Translations under genes and position numbers: made by a program
Shown here: in pieces, positions 15,081 to 48,270 of the stretch
Layout: each line of letters starts with the position of its first letter
How positions within the stretch are numbered: the stretch's first letter is position 1
The notes under the pieces: model-generated
Told to the model about the DNA's origin: nothing
The model's database searches: none
What the model saw: only the letters and a program-made list of their open reading frames with translations
From: Chlorokybus atmophyticus
Lineage: Eukaryota > Plantae > Mesostigma and Chlorokybus algae
Assembly: GCA_009103225.1 (NCBI GenBank)
Contig: RHPI01003516.1
Span: 148,062-212,061, forward strand
Direction: 5' to 3'
DNA: 64,000 nucleotides

Positions 15081-15287
15081 TCTGTGTTCCTCTTTGTGCT
15101 CGTCGTTTTGCTTAGTGGCTTACTAGGTTGTTCATCATGCCTGCCAAGCGCAAACTGGTTCGTATTGGAGACCAGCTGCCTGCAGGTAACTTTGTGATGT
15201 TTTAGCTTCTCAGCTCCAATCTCATATTTCTCATGAATTACATGCTTGCTCATACTGGTGCTCAACATGTATGCCCATTCTCAACAG

Positions 15288-17946: not shown

Positions 17947-18189
17947 TCAACCTACATGCTCAGAGTAAGCAGGTGGAATTGCATTTCTTATTTCATGTTC
18001 TTCTTCCATCCAGTCAACCTGCATTACTGACTGCCATTGTGCAACCGTGCCACGACAGGATGCCTGGCCATACACCGGGTAGATCTGCCTCTCTCCAGGT
18101 TGCAATTGCTTGCGCTGTTCCGTGTGGGTGGACAGCTCTCCAAGGGCAGAGTCAGCGTGGCTGCATCTCAAGTCTGAGCGTAGCGGGGG
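17947..18189 (-). pseudogene. 3' part of the CACTA-borne C5 DNA methyltransferase gene (detached by the chromovirus insertion)
   Basis: PPLRSDLRC...QSVMQVDWMEEEHEIRNAIPPAYSEHVG*; motif IX/X-type end; in frame with the 5' part at 38821 onward after removing the insert. Confidence 0.88.
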
Positions 18190-18831
18190 TGTAACGATGC
18201 TCGTGCTCACATACACAGCACACAAGTCATACAACACATGTGTGCAGCTGAGCACAATCTTCACACCGGAACCTTGCCTTCACTCGCGCACGCACGCACG
18301 CGTCGAGCGCGCACACGCACACGAACACTACTACTTCTCACGCCAAGCAAGAACGCAGCAGTGTGCCTTGGACCACAACTCCCTCAAGCATGCACCAGCA
18401 TACTCACAGCAGAGAGCAGAAAACAAAGTTGGTTGCATTACACAGGGTTTTTCTATTTATACAAGCACTAGGAAGAAATAGCCTAATTAACAGGCATTTC
18501 ATTATTCACTACCAAATCTAAAGGCAGGTCCAAGTGCAGGCTCCCCGCCACGCGCGTTGGGCCTTCGGCGGCTGTGTGACTGTGCAGTCCGCGTCACCTG
18601 GCACTGCACAGCGCGTGTCCAGTCAGCGGCTGTGTCACAACCGCGTGGCAGGTGGGTCACGTCGCCGAATTAGCTGCTGTCGAGCAGGTCGCAGGCGAGT
18701 CGCGCGCGGCAGCACAGGCAGGCGCCACATGGGCTTAATAAAGCTCATAAAAGCCCTCATCAAGCCAGCAAAAAAGGCAAAATAAGTACTTTATGTACAA
18801 TAAAATACAAAAAATGCCCCAGGCTGTTACA
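18190..18831 (-). repeat. 3' LTR of the chromovirus (642 bp); PPT at 18832-18848
   Basis: TG...CA ends; near-identical to 38181-38820; purine tract adjacent on the minus strand. Confidence 0.95.
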
Positions 18832-18834
18832 CCC

Positions 18835-19304
18835 CTTCCCCCCCGGGGGAGCTTCGTCCTCGAAGCTGACGACTGCCTCCTCTGGCCTTGTAATGTTGCA
18901 AGACCTGTTTGGCATTGGTAAAGCTCTCCTCGGGCTGGTATGTCGCCTCGTGCATTGGATAGCCACGCCACTTCACCAAATACTTGCGCACGCCTCGGAT
19001 CAGCTTGTCCGTGACATTGCTTCCACTTCCCACTCAGCCTCACCTTCACGAACCACATCTGGAGGCGGACGAGCTGGTGGCTCCCCTCAATAACTTTTAA
19101 GAAGCGAGACATGAAAAACAGGGTGCACATGCATGGTATTGGGCAGCTCCAGCTTGTAGGCCACCTTCGAGATGACCTTGATCACTTTAAAGGGCCCAAA
19201 CCATCGCTCACTCAGCTTGCGCACCCCCGTGACCAGCTGCACATGCTTGGTTGAAAGCATTACAAGGTCACCCTCCTCGAACACAACATCCTTGCGACGC
19301 GCAT
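18835..19304 (-). pseudogene. pol: Chromovirus integrase C-terminus (GPF/Y) and chromodomain, degenerate
   Basis: ERWFGPFKVIKVISKVAYKLELP, HPVFHVSLLK, EWEVEA, KYLVKWRGYPMHEATYQPEE; one stop and one frameshift. Confidence 0.9.
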
Positions 19305-20168
19305 TGTCATGCCATCTACCCTCGCATGCCAGTTCTTCTCAAGCATGCCTACACCCAGCCCCACGCCCGGGCTACCAGCATGAAGACCGCGCGAGCCCCA
19401 GCCTACTGCTAGCTACTGTATCACTCATGTAGCATGTAGCTAGGGCTACTTTATAGACCTGTCTGTAGGGACCGCGCGTAGCTGATCAGTTGTAAGTCTG
19501 TCAATCACGCATGTGCTATATCAAGTCTTAGGAGATTTCCGAAATAGCATGAGGCCTCGATGTGACCGTTGGCCTAGTGCCCGCGTGGCACTGCACAGTT
19601 ATGATTTGACATGTATAAGTAGGAAGTCACGTCACCAGACTGGCTGGTGACACTGTAAGTGAGTACTGTGAGTACTAGGAGTACTAAGAAGTAAAGACTC
19701 TGTTTCTAAAGAGCTTGTAAAGCGACTTGAACTGGAAGCACGCTGCCCCGGTTGCCAAGAATTCCCTTACTGCGTGAGACACGGTGCATGCTCTTGTGCG
19801 CTGTGCCTGCCATTGCTGTGAGCTTGACGGTGGTGTGTTGTTTCAGTAGTCAGGGTGTTGTATCCACGTGTTGCACACTCATTCACCTCACTTAACAGTG
19901 TATCATTCTATCCACTCATGCAAAGAACTGTGTCCACAGCACTACCTATCGTAGTGGCTTGTTGACTTACAGTGTCACCCTCTTTGCACAAGTGAGTGTG
20001 TTGCAATCTGCATCAGATAGTGCAGTCTGCACCCAGGGATACATCGCTGGGCATTCGTTATCATTGTCATCACATAGTGCGCACAAGCACTAGTGTGTTG
20101 GGTGGTAACAGCATCAGGATAGACGGTAGAGCACAAGCACTCTACCCTTTCACCTCTGGACCAGCTGT

Positions 20169-23100
20169 ATGAGCAGGCCCACCCCGTTCTCCCCAATAGA
20201 CGAGGGTGACCTCAGCAGTTGGAGCCCAACCACCAACCTCACCTACGAGCGGACCAGTGACGGAAGCATCGACCGCAGCAGCAGAGGCTCGCGCTCCATC
20301 TCCAGCTTCACCCCGCTCCACTCTACTCCTCGTCATCCAGCTTCTCCACTATCATCGGACAGCGACGACAACGAGATGGAATCTTCCAGTTCAACCACAT
20401 CCCTGCGCTTCTCCGGACGTGCCGGCACCACCTCGCTGGATGAGTTCATCATCAAGTTCCACTCCAAGATGCGGCAGCAAGCACTGAAGAACAAAGACTG
20501 GTCAGATGAGATCTCTTTCCACATTGCTGCTCAGTATCTTGATCATGAAGCACACGATGTCTGGAAGTCCGTTGCTGAACTGCATCGAGTAGACGGCTAT
20601 GGCGAGCTTGCCAGCACCATAGCATCTGCATCCCTGCACCGTCCAGCAGGTGTCATTCCACCTGCCACTTCAGTTGCAGTAACAGGCTTGACCATAGCTG
20701 CAGCTCTCAAGCAGGCAGAGGAGGAGGAACCAGAGTTGGTACTTGTCAACTTGACCCCTGCAGAAGTTGAGTCCAAGGAGGCCACACGTCGAGTCCGCAT
20801 CCTTGACCGTTCTGCCAGCATCATTGAGGAACAAAGAGCTGTACAGCAAGCGGCAGCCGCAGAGTGGGGTACTCCTCTACCTCCAGCAACACCTGGCTCT
20901 CGTGCAGGAGGCATCACTTTCACCCTCGGGTCAGTAGCACTGCGCGCACCAGCCATCACCGTAGGTGCTGCCATCTCTGATTCTCCACTCAAGGACCTGT
21001 ACGCTGCCCTGCGCCGTACCTTCCCTCCTCAGACCACCAGCAAGGTTGAGGAACTGAGACGCTTCCGACGCAAGCCTCATGAGGATCCCCTCCGCTTGTA
21101 CTCCAGACTGGAAGGTCTGCTGAAGGACACTGACTACAAGATTGTCAGTGAGGAGGCTGCTGCAGTGATATACGTCAATGAGTTGGATGCTGCTCTGAGC
21201 GAGTCGACACGCCTGACTCTGAACTACAGCAGGCCCCTTGGCTACACCCTCAAAAAAGCCTTCGAGACTGCACAAGCCATCCACAAGCGCTTGGTGTATG
21301 AGAAGGCTGTGCTGGACACCAACCGCAGCGCCGTACGGCCTGTAGTCAGCACGACAACTGAGCCTCCTCGCCGCGACCGTGGCCGGGACGCTCCACCAGC
21401 ACGCGACAAAGGGAAACGGTCAGCTCATGCTGCACTTGCTGCCCCTGTGCTGTGTCATCGCTGTGGACGGCATGGGCACTACCAAAAGGAGTGCACCGAT
21501 GAATACTCAACTTTAGTTTGCGACCACTGTCACAAGACTGGTCATTTGGAGTCAGTCTGCTGGCTCAAGTTCCCAGAGTTGAGGCCCGCCAACAGCTACA
21601 ACCACCCTGCCAACAACTTCAGTGGCTACAACAGCAACAACACTGGGGGCCACACTGGCAACCACTTCAGTGGCTACAATAGCAACAACACTGGGGCCCA
21701 CAACAGCAACAACGCCAGTGTTCGCAAGGAAGAGCAAGGCTACAGGGGGAAGAACAGACCTCCTCAGCGTAAGGGACCAGAGACACGTCCGCGCGCTGCT
21801 GCTGTTGCCGCCAAGGCTTCAGCCAACCCACCAGCTGATGACCATATGGCAGCCCTCATGGCGCGTATGGCACGCTTGGAGGAAGACAAGGAGCAGGACT
21901 ACCGCGCCTGCTACACTGCCCGATGGGCGCTGATGGCTGCAAAACGCGAGAGAGACAGGAACACTCCGTCCCGCGTGCAACCATCACGACGAGCACGAGG
22001 GGAAGCTGCAACAACATCAGCAGGCACCTCCTCCGAAGCCACCAGTGGTGCTGCCTCCGCAGCAACAGCCACACCGGCTACAACGTCGACTCCACCAATG
22101 TCACCAGCACCCACTCCAGTTGCACCACAACCTGGTACACCGATGGGCACCGTGACGCCGACGCTGGTGAGCACACTGGCAGCAGCCGCCATTTCTACCG
22201 AATCTGCACCATTGGGCGGTGCACTTCCCACTGCCGCAGTGCCTCTCTCCGTAGGCGTTGAGACAACTCTCGCACCACCGACCGATACCGTCACAACTGC
22301 CACAATTGCCATCGTCGAGCCCGCTGTCTCTGCAGCGACGCGCGCAGCCACTCTGCCCGCTCTCGACATCACTCAGGCTGTCCCAACTGGTCCGCAAGCT
22401 GAGCGAGCATGGGAAACCATCCTGCGCGAAGCAGACCCCACTACCATGGCCTTCGGTCGGGGGGGGGAGCGCACCACACGTGTCGCCCGCAATGATCGCG
22501 TCTTCCCGTTACCAGAGGTTCAGACCCTTCCAGCACTCACTCAACACCAGTTAGAAGATGAGATCCTTGCTGGCACTGCACCTCCGGTGCGTGACAGGGT
22601 GTTTTTAATCAGCTACAGCCCACCTGTAGTGTTGGAGTTGGCTCTGCAGCTGTTCTGGGCGTTGCACAACAACATGCAGACCGCCCCGCGCCAGCCTGCA
22701 CGCATGCCAACCACCACCTTTGAACCCAGCCCGTAAGACACGTATCGGGACCGCCGAGACGCCGTCCAGCAGCGCATCGCCGCCGCAGCCGACCTGCCTT
22801 TGGGCACTGATGAAGCACTCGGACCTCCTACAATCGCTCGTCTTCATCAGCGCTACCACGCACTGGAACAAGCATATCATTGGCGACAGGATCAAGCTGC
22901 CGCCATTGCTGCACGTGAACAAGCTCTTGAAGCTACACGTGCACCAATACCTTAGTCACCAACTGCTGGTCCATCCTCCAGCACCACTCCGCTCTTCGTC
23001 GAGACCAACTCTAACCAAGCGAGGGCGTTGGCTCAACAAACCAGGGGGGTGATCGCCCCGTTGCTGCCTGCGCTGGTGGAGGATCTACCTGAGGACCAAA

Positions 23101-26100
23101 GGGAGCCAGGGAGGGGCTACCTTACACCACAAGGGTGTACACAAAGAGATGGAGCAGGACTGGTTGGAGAGCAACAACTACGCACTGCTCTGTTGCGACA
23201 AGCAACCATGCTGCATCGTCAAGAAGGCATCGGACTCAGGCAGATGCTTGGGATGGGAGACAATGGCAACGCGGCACGCGCACGGTTAGTGACGTGGCTG
23301 GTCACCAACCATCCCGCAGTCCCGTTGTTCGCTTTCGGCGCCAGAATAGCGTGGGTGGACGCATTCCTTCGCTCCATACGGCAAGCCTATGATGAAGTGG
23401 CTTCCGCCACCACTGACACTCTGGAGGGAGCTCTGGAGGCGATATTGAGTTTGCCAGGAGTGGAGGCAGGACGTCAGCGCAGGCGCATCGCCGCTGCTTA
23501 CGAGCAGCATGTCCAACAGCCAGAGACCCGCCTCACTGTACGCACACGAGCAATAACAGTGCTGGAAGTGGGAGTGGTCAACGGCAGATGGGATGCTTAC
23601 ATGGCAGGGATCCTCAGGGTGCCCACCATCACCCACGACATGAGAGCGCGGCTCCTACGCGCAGTGTACCTGCAGCCCATGCCTCAGAACCATCGCTATA
23701 TAGACGTGGACAACAATGCGACGGCTACATGGGAAGGTACACTAGTCAGAGAGGCAGCCCATGCTGTGCGATGGACCTATGCAGAGGAGCAGGCTGCACG
23801 AGAGGCAGTCCCGCAAACACCAGGTCCTCCAGGGTTCCCGCCACAGCCACTGGCCACACCTCCTGGTATGACAACAGCTGCACAGAGGGTCAACCCTCCT
23901 GCACCTCCACTTGGACAGGTTGCAGCAGCACCTCCTGTGCCTAGGCCACCACGCGTGTACCAGCAACCGCGACAAGGACGGTTTGGACAAAGCCGAGGAC
24001 AAGGAGGCCCACAAGATCCATCAGGCAGAGGAGCCCTGGCTGCCCTACGGTCAGGCCCCGCAGATGAGAATAAAGCAACAGTCTCTCCACGCAAGAGGTT
24101 CCGTCGCTTCAAGAGGCTGCGCATCAACGCCAATGCAGCCATGATCGCCAACCAAGGCAAGCACGTGACCGTCAATGGGCGGGCACCCAAACGCGTGATG
24201 CTGGACACTGGAGCACAGCCTGTCATCATTGGGCGCTATCTCGCACGAGATCTCGGCATCACCAGCGCTGAGCTGCTTCCCTGTCCCTACCAGCTGGACA
24301 CTGCAACCGGCAACCGCGACAAGGTGCTCGGCCTTACCAAGCAGGCTGTGAGCATCCGCCTCACAGGACTAAACCCTTCCCACAGCACCGAGATTGTACA
24401 ACGGTGTGTGGTCACCGATGCCGGGTCCTTTGACCTACTGCTGGGACAGGACTGCAACTTCCCTGTCGGCATGGGGATGGACTGCTGGATTGAGCAGGCA
24501 TGGTTTCGATCGCATTGGGATGAGGACGATGAAGAGGAGCAGGGATTCCTACCTCTCGAACTGGTGGCCAAGGCCCGCTCGCAACGAAGATCGGCCGCAG
24601 CAGCCACCTACAGTTCTACAAAACGCTCACGTGTGCCTCGTGCCCGAACGCAGCCAAGGACAACTGCAACAAGCTCGAGCCCGAGCCTAAACGCTGGAGG
24701 GGCCTCTCCTACACCGTACGATGAGTTTCAAGAGACTGTCACCAAAGAAGTGGCCTTTCAGGAGCCATCCGAGCGTCGCTGGAGCGCACAAGTAGCAGCA
24801 CACATGCTGCTGACCAGGCCTCAGCTCACTGCACACTTCCCTGTCTACAAAGACCAGGCTACAGTGCAGGAGCAGTACCACATAGCTACGGGAGTTGTGG
24901 AGTTCCACATGTTCCGCCAACAACAAGGCATCACCGTGCTGGAGCTGTTCGGAGGCATAGGCAGTGGGCTTGCGGCGGTCCTCAACACAGGAACAACAAT
25001 CACCAAGTACCTCTACTGTGACCCTGACCCTCATGCACAGGAGGCTCTGAGCCATCATATACGACAGCTGCACCAGCGCTACCCGCAGCAGCTACCACTG
25101 TCGGCACTGCAAGGGAGCCAGAAGGCTCTACCACAGGACATCCGCTAGATTACCAAGGATCACCTGCAGGCAGTCGGCAACGTTGATCTGCTGATAGCAG
25201 GATGGGAGTGTCAAGGGCACTCCAGGGCAGGCAGAGGCCAAGGGCTCTCTGATCCTCGCTCACAGCTGTTTTGGGAGCTAATGAGAGTCATCAAACTCCT
25301 ACAGACCAGTCAGATCGCTAGGCCCTTGGGGTACATCATCGAGAATGTGCACTCCGAGGATGACAAGCGGCATCACGTCGCTAAGGCCTATCGACAAGTA
25401 TGCTCCTTGCTGGGGCATCCTCTCATAATCAACGCCGCGCGTCATGGATCTCGCGCACACCGCGTCCGCGCCAAGTGGACCAACCTGGCCATTGTGGAGG
25501 ACCTGTTTCTGGCAGAATACCTATACAGCAATCGGCCACGAAATCTCGTCGTCAATGACATCCTGGACCCTGGACGCACAGCGCAACCAGTCACACGCCG
25601 TGACCGCCACCACTTCTACTAGTGCAACCAGCCTGGTCAGCCGCGCCGCGCACTACCCACGCTTGTATCCTATCCAAACTCCTACACGTTCCGCAATGGA
25701 GGCGACGGCATGGTGTTGGACTCAAACACTGGATAGCTGGAAGAACCCAATGCCCGCGAGCGCGAGCGTGCTATGGGATTCTTTCCAGGCAGCATCACAG
25801 GCTCCACGCTGACAACCAGTCAACAGTGTCAGTTGTTAGGGCGCGCCATGGATCAGAACAGCATGGTGTGGTACTTGGAAATGTGCTTTGCTCTTTAGGA
25901 CCGCCATGTGTCCTTCCAGGAGCTCGAACACCTGGCTGGGGGGTGGATTAATCGCTTTTCAGAGACCAAAGCAGCACACACCGCCCTCGAGACCGCCCAC
26001 ATGGAGGAGCAGGCAGCAGTCACTGTGGTAGACATTCCAGTGGTCGCTAACGCTACCTCGTGGTCCCACGCCATTGGACCGCTGGCCATAGGCCAGACTC

Positions 26101-27398
26101 GAGAACAACTCGAGGCTCTCCTCAACAAGTGGAGGAGCCAATTCAGCTTCAGTGTGAAGGAGCTGGGCATCTGCTCAGCATACCAGATGGACATTGAACT
26201 AGTGGACACCGAACCGGTGTTCAGAAGACAGTACCGCCTCTCCAAGCTAGAAGAAGACTTGGTGGAACAGAGGTGCAAGGCGCTGCTAGATGCAGGCCTG
26301 ATCGAGGAGTCCACATCGGACTTTGCGGCCGCGACCGTCATGCCCCTGAAGAAAGATTCAGCAGGCAACTGGACAGACCGGCGCATGTGTGGCGACTATC
26401 GCCCCCTCAACAACAAGACCAAGCAGGACAGGTATCCAATGCCTACCGCAGAAGGCATCTTTTACGATGTAGGAGAATGCACGGTCTTTAGTATCCTGGA
26501 TATGCGCCAAGGGTACAACCAGATCGCCATCAAGGAGGAGGACAAGCACAAGACTTCCTTCTGGGGAAACCGGCAGCTGTACCAGTGGAAGGTCATGCCC
26601 TTCGGACTGAAGAACGCTCCGGCCAAGTTCCAGCGCGTCATGGACAAAGCCCTCAAGGGGTTGGACTTCGCGCGCTGCTACATCGACGACATCCTCATCT
26701 TCAGTCACAGCAATGAGGAGCATCTCCAGCACATCGAAGAGGTGCTACAGAGGCTGAAGGAAGTCGGGATGACGGTGCACCCTGACAAGTGCACCTTCCT
26801 CACCCACAAGGTACCCTACCTAGGACACATGATTGTGCCCCATGGTGTGTACGTACAGCAGGCCAAAGTGGAGGCACTGGTGGCTATCCCTGCCCCCACA
26901 GACCTCACGCGGCTGCGGGCCTTCTTCGGCCTTGCCAACTATTACCGCCGATTTGTCAAGGACTTTGCCAAGATCGCGAGGCCTCTCAACGAACTACTGA
27001 AGAAGGACACCGAGTTCTTGTGGAAGGAGGCACAACAGGAGGCCTTTCAGGAGCTGAAGCTCCGCCTCACCACAGCTCGCATTCTGCAACGCCCTGACTA
27101 CACCAGGTTGTTCATCCTGCACACAGACTGGAGCAAGCTCGGCATGGGGGCCGTGCTCGTACAGCATGACAACAACAAGAAGGAGCGCGTAGTGTCGTAC
27201 GCCAGCCGCAGCAACAACAGTGCTGAGGCCAACTACAGCAGCTACGAAGGGGAGTGTCTCGCCGCAGTGTGGGCCATCTCCTGCTTCCGACCCTTCCTGT
27301 TGGAACGGCAGTTCCAACTGGTTACTGACCATCAACCCCTCAAGTGGCTAATGAACAACCAGCACTTGACAGGAAAGTTAGCACGATGGGCGCTGCTG
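20169..27398 (+). pseudogene. gag-pol: Single-frame polyprotein: Gag (2 CCHC knuckles) - aspartic protease - DNMT3-like C5 MTase - RT - RNase H
   Basis: ORFs 20169, 23028, 25281 and 25908 share one frame. Six in-frame stops (22734, 22953, 25146, 25620, 25734, 25896) and no frameshift. CHRCGRHGHYQKEC, CDHCHKTGHLESVC, VMLDTGA, RMCGDYRPLN, YIDDILIFS, TDWSKLGMG. Confidence 0.92.
24930..25870 (+). other. DNMT3-like cytosine-5 methyltransferase domain within the Gypsy polyprotein
   Basis: I: VLELFGGIG; IV: DLLIAGWECQGHS; V: DPRSQLFWE; VI: YIIENV; VIII: SRAHRVRAKWTNL; IX: ERERAMGF; X: QLLGRAM. Confidence 0.9.
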
Positions 27399-27839
27399 TG
27401 TTGTCTATCAGAGCTAAGCAGTGTTGAACGTGCTACAACACTAAGCCTATCTCACACACACGAGCATGCACAGCAGCAGCTTGCACACGTAAGGTATGCA
27501 ATGTGGATCATTAACTCTGGCCCGGCACACTCAATATATAGTCCTAGCCACTATCTAACCAGATGTACACAAGAGTTCCTATTGGTTATACTAGCTATGA
27601 CAGCCTGTGCTAGCAGACAAAGGACTCTCCTATCTAGGACCTTCTAGCGCCGCCAGAGATCTGCTGCATTGATATCGATGCCACACCTTCAGTCTTGCAG
27701 ATATCTCCTACTGACAGTCAGGGACTGTCAATGTAGGCGACTGTCAATCCAGGGGCTGTCAATGTAGGCGACTGTCAATGCAAAGGGGCTGTCCAAGCTG
27801 ACTGTAGCTGGTGAGGACAGTCGGGGCTGTCCTCCAACA
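27399..27839 (-). repeat. Copia 3' LTR (441 bp)
   Basis: By eye identical to the 5' LTR except for one substitution near the start and one extra 33-bp repeat unit. Confidence 0.95.
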
Positions 27840-27879
27840 CTCCCACGCAGGCAGCTTGACAGTCTTCATGCTTGGACCT

Positions 27880-30800
27880 TCACTTGATGCCAAGCCCTGT
27901 GCAGCAACCCTTGAACTTGGATGGGGGAAGCGTCTTGGTCATGCAGTCCGCCAACATTGCCTCGGTGTTGCAGTAGACAAATTCCACCTCCCTCCGTGCT
28001 ACACGCTCACGCACAAAGTGATGCATAACATCAATGTGCTTTGAGCGAACAGATGCAATGGGATGTTTCAGCAACTTGATTGCTCCCTGATTGTCACAGT
28101 TGATGATGATTGTGGATGCCTTGTAGCCCAGGTCTGCTACCAGCTTGCGAAGCCACAGTCCTTCCTTGACAGCCTGTGATGCAGCCATGTACTCCGCTTC
28201 GGCTGTTGATGCTGCCACAGTGGGTTGTAGCTTGCTACTCCAGCTCACAACTCCACCATTCACCAAGAAAGTATAGCCCGTGGTTGACTTCCTTGTGTCC
28301 AAATCTCCAGCGTAGTCAGCATCGCAGTAGCCATGCAATGCAGTGTCTCCTCCTCCATACGTGATGCCGACAATAGGTGTGCCAGCAACGTAGCGAAGAA
28401 CGCCCTTGGCAGTCTTCCAATGCTCCATGGTTGGTGCGGACATGTGCTGTGCTAGAACTCCAACAGCAAATGCAATATCCGGCCTAGTGCTAACTGATAG
28501 GTATAGCAAACTCCCTACCAGCTCTCCATATGGGTAGGTAGCCTTGTCTGACAGTCCCTCTCCGTCGACAGCCCTGCTCATCCGTGCTCCAACAGCCATA
28601 GGAACCGACTTGTACTTGGCCTCCTGTAGCCCAAACTTGTCCGCCAACTTTAACACCATCTGCTCCTGGCTGATGTTGACAGTCTTGCGCTCCCTGTCCC
28701 TCGAAATTACCATGCCAAGAAAATACTTGGCCTCTCCCAGATCTCTAGTGTTGAAGGTCTTCATGAGCGACTCTTTGACGTTGCTCACCTCCTTCATCTC
28801 CCTTGCAGCAACGAGAATATCATCCACATACACAAGAAGCCAGACCTCCTTATTCGGGTGGATGAACAGGCCTGGGTCAGCTCCGGATGCGGTGAAACCC
28901 AGTCCCTCAAGCTCCTTGCTCAGACGAATGTGCCACACCCTGGGTGCTTGCTTCAAGCCGTAGAGCGCCTTCACTAACTTGCAAGCAGTCTTCGGTCCTC
29001 CCTCTTGATAGCCCTTGGGCTGAATGTAGATTTCCTCCTCAAGTTCGCCATAAAGGAAGGCTGTCTTCACATCCAAGTGATGCAACTCCAAGTCCTCAGC
29101 TACAACGAGAGCAAGCATGGTGCGGAACGTCACATGCTTACTAGCAGGTGCGAAGACCTCGTTGAAGTCGATACCTTCTTGTTGCAGGAAGCCCTTCGCC
29201 ACCAGCCTTGCCTTGTATCTCTCGATGTTGCCGTTGCCGTCACGCTTGATCTTGTATACCCACTTGACTGGGATAGGCTTGACTCCATGAGGTACCTTCT
29301 CCAATGTCCAGGTATGGTTGGCATGCAGTGATGCCATCTCCTCATCCATTGCTTGTTGCCACATCTCTGCGTCAGAGCCTTTGAGCGCCTCTTCATATGT
29401 GGTGGGTTCGACAGTCCCTCCCACGTTGGCGCTTGCGACCATAGCCTTGTAGAAGCCTTGTGGGTGATGTCTCCCTCTCAGGTTGTAGCCCCCTTGCTCC
29501 TCTTGCTGCTGGTCATTGTTGGGTGTGTTGGTTTTGCTGCTGTCTGCTGATGATGCGTCGGGGTCAGCTCCATATTGACAGTCCAGAAGGTTGACAGCCT
29601 GCAGGGACTGTCGGTTGGGACTGTCAATGGCAGTAGGGGCTGTCAATGAAGAATCTTGACAGGCGCCTCCTTCTTGAGCTGGTTGTGCTTGAGCGTCTTC
29701 CTTGCATTTTATCACAGTGTTTCCAGCAGCAGGTGTAGTGCCTCCCTCAGCAAAAACAACATCACGACTAATAACAATCTTGCCAGTTTCCTCCACCAGC
29801 ACGCGATAGGCTTTGCTATTGGCTTCGTAGCCAAGAAACACTCCCTTTTTGCTGGCAGGTTGCAGCTTGTTCCTCAACTGTTTCGGCACGTGTACATACG
29901 CTCGCGAGCCCCAAACCCTCAGCATTGACACGTCCGGCTGTCGACCATAGAACAGCTCCCACGGTGTCTTGGTTTCCATGCGCACTGGTGATCGGTTGCG
30001 GACATAGTTGGCAGTCAGCAATGCTTCTTTCCACCAGTGATCTTTGAGTTGAGCGTCCGTAAGCATGGCTCTCACTTTCTCCAGAAGTGTGCGATTGAGC
30101 CTCTCTGCAGCTCCGTTTTGTTGAGGTGTATATGGTGCGGTGGTTTCATGGGTCAGGCCTTTGCTTGTGAAGTATGCTTTGAGTTCGTTATTGACATACT
30201 CGCCTCCTCTGTCGGTGCGAACAGTAACTGTCTTGTGTCTTGATTGCGTCTCCAGCATAGTGAGGACCTTCTTGACAGTCCCAGCAACTTCGGACTTCAG
30301 CTTCAAGGCACAATGACAGACAGCTTGCTATAGTCGTCAAGGAAGGTGCAGAAGTACAGGCTTCCCTCTCCCTTGGCAGCAACAGGCAAAGGACCGCAGA
30401 CATCCATATGCACCAGCTCTAACACCCTCGTGCATACATGTGCTGATTGTGGGAAGGGCTGTCGATGCTGCTTGCCAAGCACACAGGCTTCACACAACAC
30501 ACCTTGCTGAGCATGGAACTCCTCCGCTTTAATGTTGATTCCTTGAACCATGTTCTTCTTCACCAGCCTTGCAAGGTTGTCGTACCCTAAATGTGAAAAA
30601 CGGCGATGCCATAGCTGAGCTGTCTCTTCCTTGGCGCGTGCAGCAAATGCGCGGCTGTCAATCTTCTCATTGACAGTTGCAGCCTCCCTAATGTGGTAGA
30701 GGTCTTCCTTGAGCGTGCTCTCCACCAAGGTGACGTCATTCTTCACAATGTAACCCTTATCACCTTCGAACACAACTTTTCCTCCACTTTTGGCAGCAAC

Positions 30801-31979
30801 TCGTACAGAGAACAGACAAGTGCCAAGCCTGGGGACGTACAGAACATCCTTGAGAAGAATGTGTGTCATTGCATTGCCAACCTTGCAATGCAGATGGACA
30901 GTCCCTCTGCCAGTAGCCTCCAGCAACTCCTGGTTGCCAAATTCCACCATGATGGGGGAGGAGAGGGATTGATAGTCCTCCATCTTGCTCTTGTTGTTGG
31001 TGAGATGACGCGTGCAGCCTGAGTCCAGGACCCATGACGAAGACGATTGAACAGCCCCTATATAGCTCAGAGCCTTGGGTTGTCTTTCAACAACTAGTGG
31101 TGCTGGAACCTTCAATTGCTCCCCTTTGCTCCGTCTACCAGAGTCTTCAACTTGTTGACAGGCTGTTTGTTGACAGCCCGTATTGACAGTCCTTGCAGCA
31201 AATGCGACAGTCTTCTCGCTTTGCTGTCCTCCTCCCTTTCTCTTCGCTTCATCACGCTGCAGTTTCCTACACTCCTTCTTCCAATGGCCCTCCTTCTTGC
31301 AATAGTGGCACGTTCCCTTCTTTCTTTGAGGACGAGAACTGCCTCCCTGTTGTTGATAGCCCTTGAAGGGTGTTGTTGCAAAAGCAACTGCATCTCCACC
31401 GCTGTCCGCCTTATTGGCCTTCCGCTGCTCTACTTGCAGCAGGTAGGGTGTCACAGCATCAAGGAGAAGCTCGGTTGATGATGACTCCAGCACTGTGACC
31501 ACCATCTCGTACTCTTCTGGCAGGCCCGCCAGGATAGCCCATACCATCTCCGTTTCTTTGACATCATGCCCAACTCCTGCAAGGTCTCGTTGCAGATCTC
31601 TTGCTCGGGCAATGTACTTGACGAGCGGCTCTCCGGGATCCTTTTTGAATGCACTGAGGTCCTTGCGTAGTTGCAGCCTCCTTGCATTGTTTCTGGCATT
31701 GAAGAAGTCCTGCAACTTCTTCCAACACTACCGACCAGTCTTGCACTCATTAATCAAGCCAAGGTGATGCTCCTTCACATGCAGGCCAATGCGTGCAAGA
31801 GCCTTCAAGCTATTCTTGGCATAAGCTGACTCTTCACCTGCCCGTGCCTCCGCTCCGTCAGGATCCACATACTCCCAGAGCTGCTTGGTAATCAGCACCA
31901 TCTTCATGCGTACACTCCATGTGTTGTAGTTGTCTAAGTCCAGCATCTCCACCATCATCTTGTCGTCACTGGTAGCCAT
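27880..31979 (-). pseudogene. gag-pol: Copia gag-pol (Gag CCHC, PR, INT, RT, RNase H) with one stop and one frameshift
   Basis: CHYCKKEGHWKKEC, WVLDSGCTRH, LWHRRFSHL, VRTDRGGEY, QNGAAERLNRT, KARLVAKGF, YVDDIL, CDADYAGD. TAG at 31728-31730; frameshift at ~30305. Confidence 0.95.
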
Positions 31980-32104
31980 GTAGCCTTCTCCTGCTCCTCG
32001 TGCAGACGGCTGTCGGCTGTCCCTCAGCTCCCACGCTGACCCAGCTAGAGATGTTGTGGTGGTCCTTAGCTAAACCTCAACCCAGCTAGTGTGGGCCCAT
32101 AACC

Positions 32105-32512
32105 TGTTGTCAATCAGAGCTAAGCAGTGTTGAACGTGCTACAACACTAAGCCTATCTCACACACACGAGCATGCACAGCAGCAGCTTGCACACGTAAGG
32201 TATGCAATGTGGATCATTAACTCTGGCCCGGCACACTCAATATATAGTCCTAGCCACTATCTAACCAGATGTACACAAGAGTTCCTATTGGTTATACTAG
32301 CTATGACAGCCTGTGCTAGCAGACAAAGGACTCTCCTATCTAGGACCTTCTAGCGCCGCCAGAGATCTGCTGCATTGATATCGATGCCACACCTTCAGTC
32401 TTGCAGATATCTCCTACTGACAGTCAGGGACTGTCAATGTAGGCGACTGTCAATCCAGGGGCTGTCCAAGCTGACTGTAGCTGGTGAGGACAGTCGGGGC
32501 TGTCCTCCAACA
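32105..32512 (-). repeat. Copia 5' LTR (408 bp)
   Basis: TGTTG...CAACA; PBS adjacent. Confidence 0.95.
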
Positions 32513-32517
32513 TGCTG

Positions 32518-33756
32518 CTCCAGGAGTACGACTTCGAGGTGGAACACCGCGCAGGCCTTGCCAACCAGGATGCGGATGGCCTCAGCCGTAACCCCCACCT
32601 CAGCACCAACGACGCCACAGGCGCCCGACATGAGTTGGGTCCTACAGCTGCACCTTCAGGTGTGGCCACCATGTTCGCTGTTGCTGCGCTACGCTCGGGA
32701 CGCAGGACTCAGACCGCTGAGGCAGCAGCAGACGGGGACATGCCCGCTCTCGAGCCCGCCATCACCACCACCGATCCTTTATCAGACGAAGCAATCGCTG
32801 CCGACCCTGAGGTGGATGATGAGGAGCTGGCACCCACCGACACACAACAAGACATCTGGCTGGACGAGCCATCCCTCGCACGGCTTCAGACTGGACAACT
32901 TCCAGCAGGCATGAGCGCACGCAAGAAGGACCGCGTCCGACAACGCACTCAGCGTTACCGCTGGGCCAACGACAGGCTGTATCGACGGATACAGATGCAG
33001 ATCAGGAGGTCCCCACACCAGCTGCACGTGAAGGCATCATCTCCTCCCTTCACATCGAGCTCGGGCACTTCGGTGTCAAGCGCACGGTCAGCCTGGTCAG
33101 GACCCATTACTGGTGGTATGGGGTGCACAGACAGGTGCGGGAGTTCGTCAGCAACTGTCAGCAGTGTGACATGGTTCGCGCCAGCCTCAACACGCGCAAT
33201 GCCACCTTGCATCCCCTTCCCATTTCCGGGTTGTTCTACCGCTGGGGACTGGACATCCTCGGAGACCTAGCGCCCTCAGCGCGAGGCAACCGCTACATCC
33301 TCGTCATGATCGAGCACTTCTCCAAGTGGGTGGAGCTGGTGCCCCTGCCCGACAAGAGCAGTGAGGGAGTAGCCCAGGCTTTCCTCTCCCATGTACTCGG
33401 ACGTTTCGGCAGCTGCGCTGAAGTCATCACCGACCAGGGTACGGAGTTCAGAGGAGCCTTCGATAAGCTTATCGACAGATGCTTCATCGACCACCGTCGC
33501 ACCTCACGCGACCACCCGCAGGCCGACGGCCTCGCCGAGCGTACCGTGCAGACCATCAAGAAGGCACTGCGCAAGTACGTCCTTGCCTACGAGAAGAATA
33601 CCTGGGATGATCACCTCCCATGGGTAGCAATGGGCTACCGGCTGTCCAAGCAGGCAGCCCTGCGAGAGTACAGCCCATACTATCTACTGTTCGGAAGGCA
33701 GCCATTGCTCCCTTTCCGCGCACAGCAGGAGGTCGACAGAGTGGTGGACAATCTCG
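32518..33756 (+). pseudogene. pol: Continuation of the DNMT-Gypsy pol: RNase H end, linker and integrase (HHCC + DDE core)
   Basis: LQEYDFEVEHRAG, HIELGHFGVKR, CQQCD, RWGLDILG, ITDQGTEF, DGLAERTVQ; frameshift at ~32990. Confidence 0.92.
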
Positions 33757-33757
33757 N
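33757..33757. other. Single-N assembly join; 33758-33818 repeats 19244-19304
   Basis: N at 33757 separates two different elements; 61-bp overlap. Confidence 0.85.
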
Positions 33758-36700
33758 TGCTTGGTTGAAAGCATTACAAGGTCACCCTCCTCGAACACAA
33801 CATCCTTGCGACGCGCATCGGCGTATTGCTTTTGCCGGTTTTGCGCCACAAGCAGAGCCTCTCGAGCTGCCTTGGTAATGTCGGCACACCATTCAAGAAA
33901 GCCGTCCACGGCCTCCACATCTGAACTTTGCATGCTAGGCACCCACGCCGTCAATGGCGTCAATGGATGTTGCCCATAGTTCATAAGGAAAGGTGTCACG
34001 CCCGTGCTTGCACTCTTGTGGTTGTTAATGGTGAACTCAATCAGCTCCAGCATGTCTCCCCAATTGTCTTGGCGGCTGTTCACATAGCACCGTAGCATGT
34101 CTTCGATGACGCGGTTGGCGCGCTCCGTTTGGCCGTCCGTTTCAGGGTGGTACGCGGTGCTGAACTTCAAGCTCGTGCCTAGAGTTGCGTGGAGAGCTCT
34201 CCAAAAGTTGCCAGTAAACCGCGGGTCTCTATCACTGATAATGCTTCTTGGAAGGCCATGAGAGCGCACCACATGCTTGATGAACAACTTGGCAGCCTCG
34301 GGAGCTGTGCAAGTCTCCGTACATGGCGCCAATCGCACCATTTTGCTAGTCTTGTCCACAAACACCAAGATAGCATCATGCCCTTCACGTGTCCGTGGCA
34401 GCCCCGTGATGAAGTCAAGAGTAACTTGCTCCCACTTCGTCAAAGGTATCGGCAATGGTTGGAGCAGCCCACTGGCGCGTTGATTGCTCGCCTTCACCCT
34501 TTGACAAGTGTCGCACAATGCCACATAGTCCTTAACGTCACGATGCATCTCCGACCAGAAAAATTTCTGTTTCAACAAGGCTAGTGTCCGTTCCAGCCCT
34601 TGATGACCAGCCATTGGCACATCATGCGCTTCCTTCATCAATGCCACGCGCATGTGCGCAATGTTGGGTATGTACATGCGATCGCCATGCCATAGCAGCC
34701 CGTCCTTCAATGCCCAAAGGCCGCTATGTTCAGTCCCATTCTCCAACGCCTCAATGGTCTTCTCCCCCACCGCGTCCTCATGCAATAAGGCACGGATCTG
34801 GTCAAGCCACTTGGGCTGCACTTGCACCACCGTTTCAAGCGCGTTGAGTTGACGGCTTAATGCGTCCGCAACCTTATTTGAAGAGCCCGGCTTGTACTTC
34901 ACTTCAAAGTCGAAGAGTTGGAAGAACTCGAGCCAACGAGCTTGCCGCCGTGAGAGGTGAGGCTGCGTTTGAAGGTACCTTAATGGCGAGTGGTCCGTCT
35001 CAAGTGTGAACCGCTTGCCTTCAAGGAAACAACGCCATTGCCGTAGCGCTAGCACCTGCGCCAGCAATTCCTTCTCATGAACGGGGTAGTTGAGCTCAGC
35101 CCCGCTCATCTTCTTGCTGAAATAGGCCACCGGTTGCAAGCCGTTGCCGTGATCCTGCTGCAAAACAGCCCCAATAGCCTTGTCGGACGCATCACACGCC
35201 ACCACAAAGGGCAATTGCATGTTGGGATGCAGCAGCACGGGAGCCGATGTCAGGGCCTCTTTCAAGTCGGAAAATGCCTTTGTTGCAGCCTCCGACCAGC
35301 TCCAAGCCACCCCCTTCCTCAACAATGCCGTCAATGGTGCCGCCAAGTGCGAAAAGCCCTTTACAAACTTACGATAGTAGCCGGCAAGCCCTAGGAACGA
35401 CATGACACCCTTCACGTCCTTCGGGGCAGCCCAATCGCGCACCGCGGCAAGCTTGCTTGGATCTGCCTTGATTCCTTGCTTGGATACAATGTGGCCAAGG
35501 TATTCTACCTCTTCAAGCAAGAAGCGGCACTTGTTGAGCTGAGCAAACAACTTGTGTGTACGTAAACGCTGCATCACCTCGTGTAGCAATGCCACGTGCT
35601 CTCTCTTGCTCTTTGTGTACACAAGGATGTCGTCGAGGTACACTAGCACGCCCTTGCCAATCAGATCAGCAAAGACCTCATTCATCAAGGTTTGAAAGGT
35701 TGCCGGAGCATTTGTCATGCCAAAGGACATCACCAACCACTCATAGTGGCCATAGCGAGTGTTGAAAGCCGTCTTCTCAACGTCTTCGGGCGCAACACGG
35801 ATCTGATGGTAGCCACCAGCTAGGTCCAAGCTTGAGAAGAACTCAGCACCCTCGAGCTGCTCCAACAACTCATCAATGCGTGGCAAAGGGAACACATTCT
35901 TCTTGGTGATGTTGTTGAGTGGCCGATAGTCGATGCACATGCGCAAGGCTCCGCTCTTCTTACGTACAAATAGGATAGGTGCACCGTAAGGAGACTTGCT
36001 GTGCCTGATGTACCCACGTTGTAGAAGGTCCTCGACTTGGCTCCTCGCCTCTTCGAGTTCAGCCGGAGACAACTTGTACACCGGTCGGTACGGCGGCTTG
36101 TGCACGCCCTCTATCAGTTCCACACGGTGATCAACACTTCGCGTGGGTGGCAGACCAGCTGGTAGCCCATCCACCATGACGTCTTTGAACTCTTCAAGCA
36201 ACCTCTGCACCTCGGGGTCCTTCGAACTCTCCGAACCAGTGCCGACCAGCTCCAAGTCCGACTTGGGAGGTGTCTCACGCACCATGCACAGCCATGCATC
36301 CTTCACATTGTTCCCGGACCAGATCTGCTCCATCTTGGTCTTAGAAACTTGTGACACCAGCTCTGGAACCCCTCCCCTTGAGCTAGAAGCATGTTGTGGT
36401 GCAGCTTGCTGGCGCGCCGTCGTGTCGTGCGCGTCACGCGCATGCAGCACATTGCTAGCAGCCTCGACGCAGCTCACACGCTCTTGAACCACACACGCGC
36501 CTTGCATTGAAGCATTGAAGCACATCAAAACCTCACCACCAGCTTCCGGGGTAGTGAGCACCCGCTTCCTCCAATCAATGGCGGGGTTATGTGACCAAAG
36601 CCAAGGCAGCCCCAAAATGCCATCAAAGCCGTTGTTCAGCTCGATGCAGCAAAACCGTAGGCGATCCTTCATCATCCCCACGTGCATTTCAAGCTCTTTG

Positions 36701-37026
36701 CTTTGCTTGGAAGCTCCTCCTGCTGGCGCATAGCCGTCCGCTAGAGCCACCGAGCCGGCATTTGCCCATGACAACCACTTGTGCCGACGCGCAACCTCAC
36801 GACTCATGAAATTGCTGTTCGCGCCGCAATCCACCAGCATCTTGCACTCCATCCATGGCCCATTGCCCTCACGGATCAGAGCCATGACTCCCAACAGCTG
36901 CCTCGCCTTGTCGGGCACTCGAACCATACCGCTTTGCGTTGCCGTTGCGCACATGCCGCCAACCGTCAACAACGCTTCCACGCCAGCCGCTGGACATTCA
37001 ACATCATAGTGAGGCTGCATCACCAC
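33758..37026 (-). CDS. pol: Chromovirus pol (PR-RT-RH-INT), uninterrupted here; probably expressed by -1 frameshift from gag
   Basis: LVDCGANSNF, RMCIDYRPLN, YLDDILVY, VACDASDKAIG, HDVPMAGHQG, CDTCQ, TLDFITGLP, ISDRDPRF, DGQTERAN. Confidence 0.95.
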
Positions 37027-37046
37027 CTCAGCAGGAGCCTCTCCAG

Positions 37047-38093
37047 CTACTGAGGTGAGCCGTTTCCCGGCTGCAACATCTCCTCCTCCACCATGTTCAC
37101 GCGTCCACCGCTGCGAGCGTTGCGGGCATGTGCAGCAGACTTTGCCTTATAGATAGGGCAGTTGGAGCGCACGTGATCAGCAGAAGAGCACTCCCAGCAC
37201 TTCCGAACAGCCTTGGCAGCCTCCCGACCCTTTGGGGCCTTCATAGCAACATGGAGCGCACCCAATTCCATTGGAGTTGGTCCCAAGCCAGCCCCCTGAG
37301 TTGCTGCAGCTCCCGAACCAGCCCCAACAGATGCGTATGAGCGATACGAACCTCCACGGAAGTGATTGTAATGTCCACGATCAGTGTTTTTGGCAGCCCC
37401 CTTGAAGTACAACACGTCCGTGCGCTCAGCAATGCGAATGGCCTCCGCGAGAGTCTTGGCGTCACGAAGCTCAACTTCCTTGCGACAAAGAGTCTTCAAC
37501 CCGCGCGTGTAGCGGTCCAGCTGCTCCTCCTCAGTCATGTTCGGTACAGAGAGCACAAGACGCTGAAACGCAGAGGTATAGGCCATCACGGACTGCGTTT
37601 GCACAAGCGTAGAGAGCTGGTCGCGTGCCGTCTTCACACTCTCCACCGGTACGAACTGTTTCTTCACCTCAGCAGCCAGCTCAGCCACGGTAGTGAAAGG
37701 AACCTCAAGACCAGCTTCCACACGAGCACAACGATGACGCCACCACACAAGTGCAGCTCCCTCAAAGAAAGTAGCAGCCACATCGACACGGAGATGTATA
37801 GGTACCTCGGTGAGCTTTAACCATGTCGAAACGGCAAACACCCACTCCTCCACACAGTCACCGTCCCTCTGACCCTTGAATGGCTTTGGTTTTGGTAGCT
37901 TCACATGACGAGAGGCTGATGGGGCAACCACAGGAGCTGTAACGGGCGTGGACGCGCGCGCTTGCGCCATGGCTTGTTGAAATTGTGCCGCTTGAGCTTG
38001 GGCAGATGCTTGGACACGTTGCAGCTCCTCATGAGCAGCTACCAGCACTTGCTGAAGCTCCACAACACGTGCATCATCCATGGTAGCGTCCAT
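37047..38093 (-). CDS. gag: Chromovirus gag
   Basis: KLPKPKPFKG, capsid-like helices (ARDQLSTLVQTQSVMAYTSAF), PTPMELG, CWECSSADHVRSNC. Confidence 0.93.
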   Translation of the reverse strand: MDATMDDARVVELQQVLVAAHEELQRVQASAQAQAAQFQQAMAQARASTPVTAPVVAPSASRHVKLPKPKPFKGQRDGDCVEEWVFAVSTWLKLTEVPIHLRVDVAATFFEGAALVWWRHRCARVEAGLEVPFTTVAELAAEVKKQFVPVESVKTARDQLSTLVQTQSVMAYTSAFQRLVLSVPNMTEEEQLDRYTRGLKTLCRKEVELRDAKTLAEAIRIAERTDVLYFKGAAKNTDRGHYNHFRGGSYRSYASVGAGSGAAATQGAGLGPTPMELGALHVAMKAPKGREAAKAVRKCWECSSADHVRSNCPIYKAKSAAHARNARSGGRVNMVEEEMLQPGNGSPQ

Positions 38094-38165
38094 AAACAGA
38101 AAAATACCTCACACACCAAAGAGATAGTTAATATCCCCTTAAAACAAGAAACCCAACCCCTCCAA

Positions 38166-38179
38166 GGGCTCCGATACCA
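38166..38179 (-). promoter_or_regulatory. Primer binding site TGGTATCGGAGCCC (tRNAiMet 3' end type)
   Basis: 1 nt from the 5' LTR; one mismatch to the canonical TGGTATCAGAGC. Confidence 0.85.
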
Positions 38180-38180
38180 C

Positions 38181-38820
38181 TGTAACGATGCTCGTGCTCA
38201 CATACACAGCACACAAGTCATACAACACATGTGTGCAGCTGAGCACAATCTTCACACCGGAACCTTGCCTTCACTCGCGCACGCACGCACGCGTCGAGCG
38301 CGCCCACGCACACGAACACTACTACTTCTCACGCCAAGCAAGAACGCAGCAGTGTGCCTTGGACCACAACTCCCTCAAGCATGCACCAGCATACTCACAG
38401 CAGAGAGCAGAAAACAAAGTTGGTTGCATTACACAGGGTTTTTCTGTTTATACAAGCACTAGGAAGAAATAGCCTAATTAAGAGGCATTTCATTATTCAC
38501 TACCAAATCTAAAGGCAGGTCCAAGTGCAGGCTCCCCGCCACGCGCGTTGGGCCTTCGGCGGCTGTGTGACTGTGCAGTCCGCGTCACCTGGCACTGCAC
38601 AGCGCGTGTCCAGTCAGCGGCTGTATTACAACCGCGTGGCAGGTGGGTCACGTCGCCGAATTAGCTGCTGTCGAGCAGGTCGCAGGCGAGTCGCGCGGCA
38701 GCAGGGGCAGGCGCCACATGGGCTTAATAAAGCTCATAAAAGCCCTCATCAAGCCAGCAAAAAAGGCAAAATAAGTACTTTATGTACAATAAAATACAAA
38801 AAATGCCCCAGGCTGTTACA
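38181..38820 (-). repeat. 5' LTR of the chromovirus (640 bp)
   Basis: Near-identical to 18190-18831. Confidence 0.95.
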
Positions 38821-40192
38821 GGGGGGGTCGTCTCAAAAATGTGATGCCAATACACGTCAAGGTTGAACATGCCGCATAGCTTGAGGTGTGCAGTCATGTG
38901 CGTAAATGCCCCTGCTACGTTCTCTATGACCCATGGCTTGCCGCTCAACTGCAATCTTGTTCTCATGGGTGCAATTAGGTTGACGTGATCCCGGCGATCT
39001 CCAACAATGGCTTGTTGACAAGAAGGGATGGCACCACCGAGCGCTTGACATGGAGGACTCGCCCATAATGCATGGTATGGGGACAGGGCGGCGTCTAGTG
39101 CATTCAGCTGACTGAAATTGAATGGGTATGATGGTTGAGGCTTGTTGTCTATGCCCTCAACATCAAAACCTGCCCTGTACAGGCCCATGGCTACTCCACC
39201 CGCGCCGCAAAAAAGGTCCAGTGCACAAGGCATGTAATGTCTGCCGCTTGGGTCGCATGGAGTTCGCGTTAAAAGAAGTGGCGGTGGCTTGGGCCAAGGA
39301 TCCAGCTCTCTCCCAGGCAAGTCCTGCAGTTTCAGGCAAGATTGACCCCCAACGCGAACCATCACTACCTGCATGTCCGAAACAAGGCTCTGCTTTGGGA
39401 ACGCCGCGATGTTCCACTTTTTGATCAAGATGTGGTGCAGCCGTGGATCCTCATTGTAATCGTCGTACTGGATGATATGTTTTCCTATGCCACGGCAAGT
39501 GCTTAAATGAGTACACATATGTACATTGCATACTATGAAGTATATGATTACCTGTATACCTGTATTTGCATCAATTTTGATGATGCGGCCTGAATACCAG
39601 GTGCTCATTCTAGGCTGGTACACCGCAACATGACTTGCCACCAAAGCCTGCCCCTCATAAATGATCTCCTTTCGCCAAGCAGCCAGTGTCGCGACGTCGT
39701 CGACGGCGTCGACAACTGTGTTTCCCTACCATCCATCAGAAGTGAGTTGTTCATGTATGCGCGCACTATTTTGCTGCTTGCAAGGACAGTTGAACTCACT
39801 CTGTGGTCATGATTAACTTGGGCAGTAGTGGACTTGCCGCGGCCATTGCGTGCGAGCTGACGTCGAACCACATTGCACACCTACCCATCTCGATATGCTC
39901 CAGGCCGAGCCCAAGGCAGGTGATCCATAGGCTCGCCGTCCCACTCGAACTTGGAGAGCGAGCAATGCAGGCAAGTGCACTCCTCCCAAAAAAAATCTGG
40001 CCTCATGCATTTTGCCAGCAGTCTGCATTGCCTCACATTGTCTCCCCTGGCCTTGTGGTGCCAGCAGGCTTCATAAAAGCCATACTGCTCACTGTACAGC
40101 TTGCACTTCTCTTCATGCTGTTGCAGACGTTTGTTGTTGCCATTCCTAACCAAATATGCTTTGCAGAAGCTACACACTTTGATGCCGCGCAT
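38821..40192 (-). pseudogene. 5' part of a CACTA cargo gene: Cys-rich N-terminus - Tudor-like domain - bacterial/phage-type C5 DNA methyltransferase
   Basis: GQALVASHVAVYQPRMSTWYSGRIIKIDANTG/KHIIQYDD (Tudor-like). ALDLFCGAGG (I), WASPPCQ (IV, 39045), WVIENV (VI, 38916), KLCGMFNLDVYWHHIFET (VIII). GT-AG introns preserve the frame. TAG at 39881-39883. Confidence 0.88.
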
Positions 40193-45470: not shown

Positions 45471-45565
45471 TAGTACAAGAGGTACTGTTTGCAATTGTGA
45501 TGTCTCTCATATACTCATATCCTACTGTAAACTGTAGACCTGGCCACTGAACCTTTGTTCACAGG

Positions 45566-47445: not shown

Positions 47446-47679
47446 CAAAGACACGAGTTGAGCTAGTAGTAGTAGGTGGTGTGTAGCATAGCAATGCTGT
47501 AGTCCATATCGGAGCTGTGCCCCACCATTAACTCAAACCAGCTGTGTAGAATTGCTGAGCAACTTTGGCTTTTACATATATTAAACTGTATATTAGAATT
47601 AGCAGTGCAATCTACTTGGTTTTTAATCACATTCGGGACTTGGCTAAAATGAGAGTATATGTTTATTCGTGTGGGGTTG

Positions 47680-48264: not shown

Positions 48265-48270
48265 TAATAT

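Follow-up and report, generated by a model that had tools for sequence, protein, structure and literature searches.

Retrotransposons of Symbiodinium and Klebsormidium were described to encode DNA methyltransferases (DNMTs), as domains of eukaryotic DNMT3 or orphan type that form part of retroelement open reading frames (ORFs) (de Mendoza et al., 2018, PMC5890265). In giant-virus genomes, Mariner transposons carry an endonuclease and a C5 methyltransferase as restriction-modification-like cassettes, without a histone reader and without introns (Bao & Jurka, 2013, PMC3627910). Fungal DNA transposons (EnSpm, Plavaka, KDZ and others) encode TET/JBP dioxygenases, and in CMC-clade elements such a DNA-modification enzyme is a separate cargo gene that moves between lineages (PMC12730594). 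Here, a window of 64,000 nucleotides from the alga Chlorokybus atmophyticus was analyzed (assembly GCA_009103225.1, contig RHPI01003516.1, positions 148,062 to 212,061 of the forward strand; coordinates below are those of the window). It harbors a split gene in which a Tudor domain is joined to a minimal C5 cytosine methyltransferase. It is likely that this gene belongs to the cargo of a CACTA/EnSpm-type DNA transposon, occurs in multiple copies and is represented here by a pseudogene.

Like the retroelements of Symbiodinium and Klebsormidium, this would be a protist or charophyte mobile element with its own C5 cytosine methyltransferase, whereas the enzyme here is of a minimal phage/giant-virus type and is encoded, together with a Tudor domain, by a separate spliced gene of a class II CACTA-type element. 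With the viral Mariner transposons it shares a C5 DNA methyltransferase on a DNA transposon and a giant-virus context, but the carrier is CACTA-type and resides in a cellular genome. The fungal transposons offer a parallel with the opposing enzyme: their TET/JBP cargo removes 5-methylcytosine (5mC), while the cargo described here would write it and is fused to a chromatin reader. A histone-mark reader is likewise combined with a DNA methyltransferase in DNMT3 (PWWP/ADD), plant CMT (chromodomain) and bdelloid N4CMT (chromodomain), and in N4CMT and the orphan DNMTs the catalytic domain was horizontally acquired, as is proposed here; the present gene differs from the known reader-writers in its catalytic lineage and in its PDS5C-type Tudor reader. 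The known mobile-element methyltransferases, those of retrotransposons and of giant-virus Mariner elements, are not coupled to a histone reader. The first-pass annotation of this DNA had put the locus forward as a candidate for an undescribed system. In the literature, no DNA transposon with a methyltransferase fused to a Tudor domain was found; a DNA transposon carrying a C5 methyltransferase had already been reported with the Mariner elements.

The methyltransferase is encoded on the minus strand by two ORFs on either side of a 20.6-kb insert. The ORF at 38724-39644 bears DLFCGAGG (39195-39218), GFDVEGIDNKPQPSYPFNF, SPPCQ (Cys codon 39048-39050), KPWVIENV (IENV at 38916-38927) and LCGMFNLDVY, and the ORF at 17947-18264 contains VMQVDWM and closes with NAIPPAYSEHVG and a stop codon at 17947-17949; all methyltransferase motifs quoted earlier were thereby found. 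Upon removal of 18190-38820 and of one CCCCC, position 38821 is joined to 18184 and the sequence continues in frame (...HHIFETTPPLRSDLRC...). The C-terminal piece alone matched the C-termini of homologues that had been picked using the N-terminal piece only, and the joined protein of 229 amino acids aligned in one block (residues 15-229) to homologues of 200-240 amino acids with 41-46% identity. Because of this independent C-terminal match and the single-block, end-to-end alignment, the join is not a chance frame. The in-frame join, the long terminal repeats (LTRs) and CCCCC duplication of the insert and the homologue alignment all agree on a gene split by the insert, as had been proposed.

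Upstream of the methyltransferase, only one combination of GT-AG pairs preserves the frame, which yields two predicted introns and a spliced coding sequence of 1380 nt (459 codons) with one internal stop (Table 1). The ancestral layout comprised a Cys-rich exon, a Tudor domain and the 229-residue C5 methyltransferase core, about 459 amino acids in all. The core lies entirely in exon 3 and both introns are N-terminal, one of them inside the Tudor domain. The earlier description of an intronised acquisition thus applies to the N-terminal part, while the methyltransferase core itself has no intron. Two public runs hold the locus; both consist of assembled contigs, one labelled 'DNA?' and the other of unrecorded kind. 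Multi-copy LTRs and diverged exon copies were detected in the contigs of both, and neither expression nor an empty site was seen in them. At 39682-39828, contigs of the two runs skip 145 nt; this skip does not match intron 1 and probably reflects a deletion in a diverged copy.

The copy in the window carries two further lesions apart from the insert. Codon 104 is TAG, and contigs of the two runs that are at least 85% alike have a plus-strand G at 39883, which turns the codon into CAG; given these related contigs, the stop is probably a mutation of this copy. Motif VIII reads WHH (38841-38849; VYWHHIFE) where the family has a conserved RHR, the arginines being replaced by W and H. Among 74 aligned homologues, all share one of these arginines and at least 90% the other, so that the RxR expected of a C5 methyltransferase is missing from this copy. 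Starting from ancestral CGG and CGC codons, both changes to WHH would be C-to-T or G-to-A transitions, and the change from CAG to TAG is likewise a transition. Since the 20.6-kb insert, the TAG and the WHH are three independent lesions, this locus is unable to make the protein and is a pseudogene within a multi-copy family. The hidden gene is real, its family unusual and this copy dead, while its function is a prediction.

Motifs I (DLFCGAGG), IV (SPPCQ with the catalytic Cys) and VI (IENV) are present and aligned with those of the homologues. A word-seeded search from the N-terminal piece retrieved 4606 relatives, the best of which are 49-55% identical, 200-240 amino acids long and located on phage-like contigs beside HNH, Thy1, RusA and N6/N4 methyltransferase genes; the contigs of the IMG/VR relatives are mostly 20-70 kb. 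Homologues pass the Pfam threshold for PF00145, which many of the word-seeded relatives carry. With tblastn against phage genomes, 310 records were obtained at 44-46% identity, annotated as DNA methyltransferase and mostly from actinophages; phages of Mycobacterium (187), Streptomyces (52), Paenibacillus (28) and Arthrobacter (22) were the most frequent. In a phmmer search of all PDB chains no eukaryotic DNMT was found, and the best match was a bacterial methyltransferase (E 0.027) in motif I only. These searches support membership of the enzyme in a short phage/actinobacterial-type family apart from DNMT1, DNMT3, CMT, DRM and DNMT2. At the family level, the first-pass annotation was therefore right in naming an actinophage-like short methylase unlike DNMT1/CMT/DNMT3/DRM, and the best matches were phage-type enzymes rather than a eukaryotic DNMT clade.

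When 1.84 billion representatives were searched exhaustively with HMMER, a small group of proteins (P0124, P0126, P0131 and P0203) with specific similarities emerged. The window protein shares with them an N-terminal P-x-x-P-x-G extension and indels, an ungapped segment after motif IV, and the segments RC-H...LG and PVYG...RGT. In P0126 and P0131 the methyltransferase is fused to an MBD domain, while P0124 adjoins an MBD gene; its contig of 25.7 kb further encodes an mRNA triphosphatase, kinases, topoisomerase II, thioredoxin and YqaJ. UCH and capping-enzyme genes are neighbours of P0203, which is annotated in the green alga Chromochloris zofingiensis on a scaffold that is unplaced. On giant-virus-like contigs, the methyltransferase is fused to or followed directly by MBD (L007 9239-10534; P0126, P0131), which represents a 5mC writer paired with a 5mC reader in viruses. 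The short actinobacteriophage and the MBD-linked giant-virus methyltransferases belong to the same catalytic family as the window protein (41-55% identity, colinear, same motif order), but none of them has a Tudor domain, a Cys-rich N-terminus or introns.

In a quick tree, the window protein was sister to P0203/P0131/P0126/P0124 with a Shimodaira-Hasegawa-like approximate likelihood ratio test (SH-aLRT) support of 96. A careful tree gave the same sister position with ultrafast bootstrap (UFBoot) 83 and SH-aLRT 82, values for which the bootstrap had not settled. The protein thus groups, with moderate support, with the giant-virus-like MBD-linked proteins, and its nearest relatives are read from these trees as a giant-virus-like lineage nested within the phage radiation. 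The actinobacterial or phage source suggested at first holds for the family; trees and gene neighbours point to the giant-virus-like MBD-linked subclade, not to actinophages directly. Fold comparison was made on the relative P0126 (residues 1-200) only. Its model had a predicted local distance difference test score (pLDDT) of 85 and a predicted template modelling score of 0.83, and it matched C5 DNA methyltransferases only (DNMT1, M.HaeIII, DNMT3A/B and M.HhaI; probability 1.00, template modelling score ~0.5). Orphan viral DNMTs are generally without companion domains, and ChloroDNMTs have PWWP (PMC12344493). As no PWWP-bearing relative was found in a search started from a giant-virus relative, which did not find a Tudor-fused one either, membership in the ChloroDNMTs is unsupported, though conceivable. 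No Tudor-fused relative was present among the best 150 of the exhaustive HMMER search, and local BLAST of the N-terminus against 266 matches revealed neither Tudor- nor PWWP-fused relatives.

When the intron-containing Tudor was compared with the PDB, the sole match was 7DE9_A in two colinear stretches, with a non-significant E of 1. 7DE9 is the Tudor domain of Arabidopsis PDS5C with histone H3 monomethylated at lysine 4 (H3K4me1) bound. The spliced Tudor region of 72 amino acids aligned over 55 residues of 7DE9_A with a Smith-Waterman score of 87, and none of 20,000 shuffles reached this score (mean 24.3, standard deviation 4.8, maximum 57). The Gumbel p of 2.6e-8 corresponds to an E of ~0.005 when corrected for the PDB search space. 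The PDS5/MSH6-like Tudor announced for the upstream exons thus resembles that of PDS5C, and the Cys-rich region announced with it is the Cys/His-rich exon 1. Atlas matches of the Tudor region were Tudor-clan families at 0.82-0.87 and are leads only; a further search with this region gave no matches. For exon 1 no family was identified, its Pfam and Atlas matches being sub-threshold. The join, the gene model, the homologue alignment and the match to 7DE9 speak in favor of the hidden Tudor-methyltransferase gene.

The ends of the carrier were read from its flanks. Those at 5472-6153 and 48352-49594 match a single gypsy pol in colinear order; a related copy inside the insert served as reference, and the pol frame resumes exactly once the element is removed (...FQLI/TDGQPLRWLM...). 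The colinear flanks and the resumed frame fix the ends of the element at 6154-48270 with an ATT duplication, and since these ends enclose the methyltransferase gene, the gene lies inside the transposon. The element had entered an older gypsy pol within its RNase H region (5215-6153, 48298-49594), which serves as an internal 'empty site'. A scan for CACTACAA-type termini had been uninformative. The imperfect inverted ends start CACCAGTAATT and are ~70% identical (by eye) across ~60 nt. In the window, 19 copies of the GAATATTCAC-like motif were counted (2.4 expected), with clusters at 6.3-6.8 kb and 47.7-48.2 kb. The NSD-like PHD finger encoded within the transposase gene represents a second chromatin-reader module of the transposon. 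Elements of the EnSpm/CMC group have 5'-CA..TG-3' ends and 2-5-bp duplications (PMC12730594), and the ends, duplication and repeats found here fit this group despite termini that are not CACTA. Carriage by a CACTA element, as first suggested, is accordingly borne out by the Tnp2-type transposase, the 3-bp duplication, the inverted ends and the subterminal repeats, but not by the termini. The locus is of value because this clean empty-site comparison places the gene within transposon ends and because the order of the nested insertions is dated.

Table 1. Coordinates of the split gene, its carrier transposon and the nested insert in the window.
Feature	Coordinates	Strand	Remarks
Left target-site duplication, ATT, 3 bp	6151-6153	.	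Colinear gypsy flanks
CACTA-type element	6154-48270	.	42.1 kb; ~21.5 kb minus insert
Left terminal inverted repeat, start CACCAGTAATTCTG	6154-6215	+	Alignment to reverse-complemented right end
Left subterminal repeats, GAATATTCAC-like	6309-6817	.	Motif count
Cargo neighbour gene	15233-17708	+	OTU-like DGNC motif, two CCCH-like fingers, gag-like segment; ORF translations
Exon 3, C-terminal part	17947-18184	-	Short variable region, motif X (NAIPPAY), stop codon
Target duplication CCCCC of LTR insert	18185-18189 and 38821-38825	.	Flanking sequence
Insert	18190-38820	-	20,631 bp, TGTAAC...GTTACA, outer Ty3/gypsy
Outer gypsy LTRs	18190-18831 (642 bp), 38181-38820 (640 bp)	-	Direct repeats
Inner gypsy-like segment	19305-33757	+	Protease, reverse transcriptase (RT)-RNase H, integrase; without LTRs; 14.45 kb
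Nested Ty1/copia	27399-32512	-	Target duplication TGCTG
Outer gypsy pol (RT-RNase H, integrase)	33556-37026	-	Part of outer Ty3/gypsy
Outer gypsy gag	37047-38093	-	Part of outer Ty3/gypsy
Exon 3, N-terminal part	38821-39484	-	Tudor second half, linker, methyltransferase motifs I, IV, VI, degenerate VIII
Intron 2	39485-39559	-	75 nt, GT..AG, phase 1, within Tudor
Exon 2	39560-39725	-	Tudor first half
Intron 1	39726-39880	-	155 nt, GT..AG, phase 0
Exon 1	39881-40192	-	Cys/His-rich region; last codon TAG 39881-39883 (codon 104)
Transposase gene, multi-exon	41207-47445	+	Head to head with methyltransferase gene
Transposase_21	42166-42360	+	29.6 bits vs 28.6
DUF4218	43529-44323	+	35.1 bits vs 27
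PHD finger exon, NSD-like	45566-45751	+	Within transposase gene
Right subterminal repeats	47677-48214	.	Motif count
Right terminal inverted repeat, ...CAAAATTACCAATG + TAATAT	48205-48270	-	Alignment with left end
Right target-site duplication ATT	48271-48273	.	Colinear gypsy flanks

If the locus is a broken copy of transposon cargo, the methyltransferase may stem from a giant virus of algae, or from the remnant of one that had integrated, and would have been joined to a host-type Tudor by exon addition. In intact copies, the Tudor could recognize a methylated tail of H3 (H3K4me1, going by PDS5C) and thereby bring the minimal methyltransferase to marked chromatin for de novo 5mC, which might serve self-silencing of the element, camouflage, or the marking or manipulation of host loci. 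That intact members are active chromatin-guided 5mC writers, made of a giant-virus enzyme and an H3K4me1-type Tudor and spread by several DNA-transposon lineages, is a tentative proposal that we regard as possible and still doubtful. If true, part of the methylome in an early-diverging streptophyte would be written by transposons. A Tudor-methyltransferase fusion of viral ancestry, carried by a class II transposon in a basal streptophyte, would be a new way of wiring foreign DNA-modifying enzymes into eukaryotic chromatin. Several observations count against the overall reading of the locus. For the methyltransferase, PF00145 scored 18 bits on the N-terminal fragment alone, below the cut-off of 22; the trees support its position moderately and give it a long branch (1.1), and the transfer could have run from virus to transposon or in the opposite direction. 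For the Tudor, Pfam Tudor_KDM3B scored 13.9 bits against 27, a lead below threshold, and the structure model built from the intron-containing ORF was unusable (pLDDT 44). Regarding expression and splicing, neither of the two sets of contigs that hold the locus is recorded as RNA. The termini (CACCAG.../...CCAATG) are not canonical CACTA, and six unexplained nucleotides, TAATAT (48265-48270), lie between the last paired base and ATT and may represent filler, a footprint or a piece of the terminus.

Rather than cargo with a role, the gene might be a passively captured passenger (a host gene or fragment, Pack-CACTA-like) in a family of decaying junk. CACTA elements capture host sequences, the copy is triply broken by insert, TAG and WHH, and RNA is missing among the runs that hold it. 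Yet this is a complete gene that has a start and a stop of its own as well as GT-AG introns, it is arranged head to head with the transposase, and no host-type homologue of this architecture appeared in large homologue searches; a mere passenger is therefore unlikely. The giant-virus-like contigs on which the nearest relatives reside, one of them in an algal assembly, would also suit an endogenised virus remnant that came to lie among transposons by accident. Such a remnant is highly improbable, as its surroundings contain no other viral hallmark genes, the gene has a eukaryotic Tudor and spliceosomal introns, and it is enclosed by the two inverted ends of one element, on either side of which a single gypsy pol continues colinearly. 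Even with cargo carriage granted, the intact protein could be something other than a writer of 5mC in DNA, either methylating RNA as DNMT2 does or acting as an inert chromatin binder. The substrates of viral-origin orphan DNMTs are unclear (PMC12344493), this copy lacks the motif VIII arginines, and some relatives have PCL, PCH or QCH in place of PCQ. Against this, the phage relatives are annotated as DNA methyltransferases, the giant-virus relatives are fused or adjacent to MBD, a methyl-DNA reader, and the fold of P0126 best matches DNA methyltransferases, so that we think it improbable that the protein acts on another substrate or on none. A pseudogene copy of transposon cargo thus remains the reading that we prefer.

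The insert that splits the gene is itself composite. The outer gypsy element entered between motif VIII and the C-terminal part of the methyltransferase, and its two LTRs differ by 7 mismatches and one 2-bp indel (98.9% identity). The inner gypsy-like segment is bordered by an exact 61-nt direct repeat (19244-19304 and 33758-33818). This repeat is far too long for the target duplication of an LTR element and is unexplained, with recombination, template switch or assembly as candidates. The LTRs of the copia element are apparently identical save one ~33-nt indel (441 vs 408 nt), and as this element is innermost in the nest, it is the latest insertion. The order of insertion was old gypsy, CACTA-type element, outer gypsy, inner segment and copia. 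The methyltransferase gene is separate from the RT/integrase ORFs, and the retroelements present here were inserted later; unlike in the retrotransposon-borne DNMTs, the methyltransferase domain is not within a retroelement. A DNMT3-like domain considered between the protease and the RT of the inner gypsy (23028-26375) was unconfirmed, Pfam giving a faint match to Methyltransf_12 (E 0.24, ~24939-25124).

CpG observed/expected ratios are 0.47-0.81, and those of TpG and CpA 1.2-1.6, in all components of the window. This depletion is compatible with CpG methylation and deamination in the genome and is not specific. The cargo neighbour gene, for which no Pfam match was obtained, is arranged tail to tail with the methyltransferase gene. 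Between the left part of the element and this OTU-like gene, two large tandem arrays with units of ~73 nt and of 60-67 nt are located at 12712-15090.

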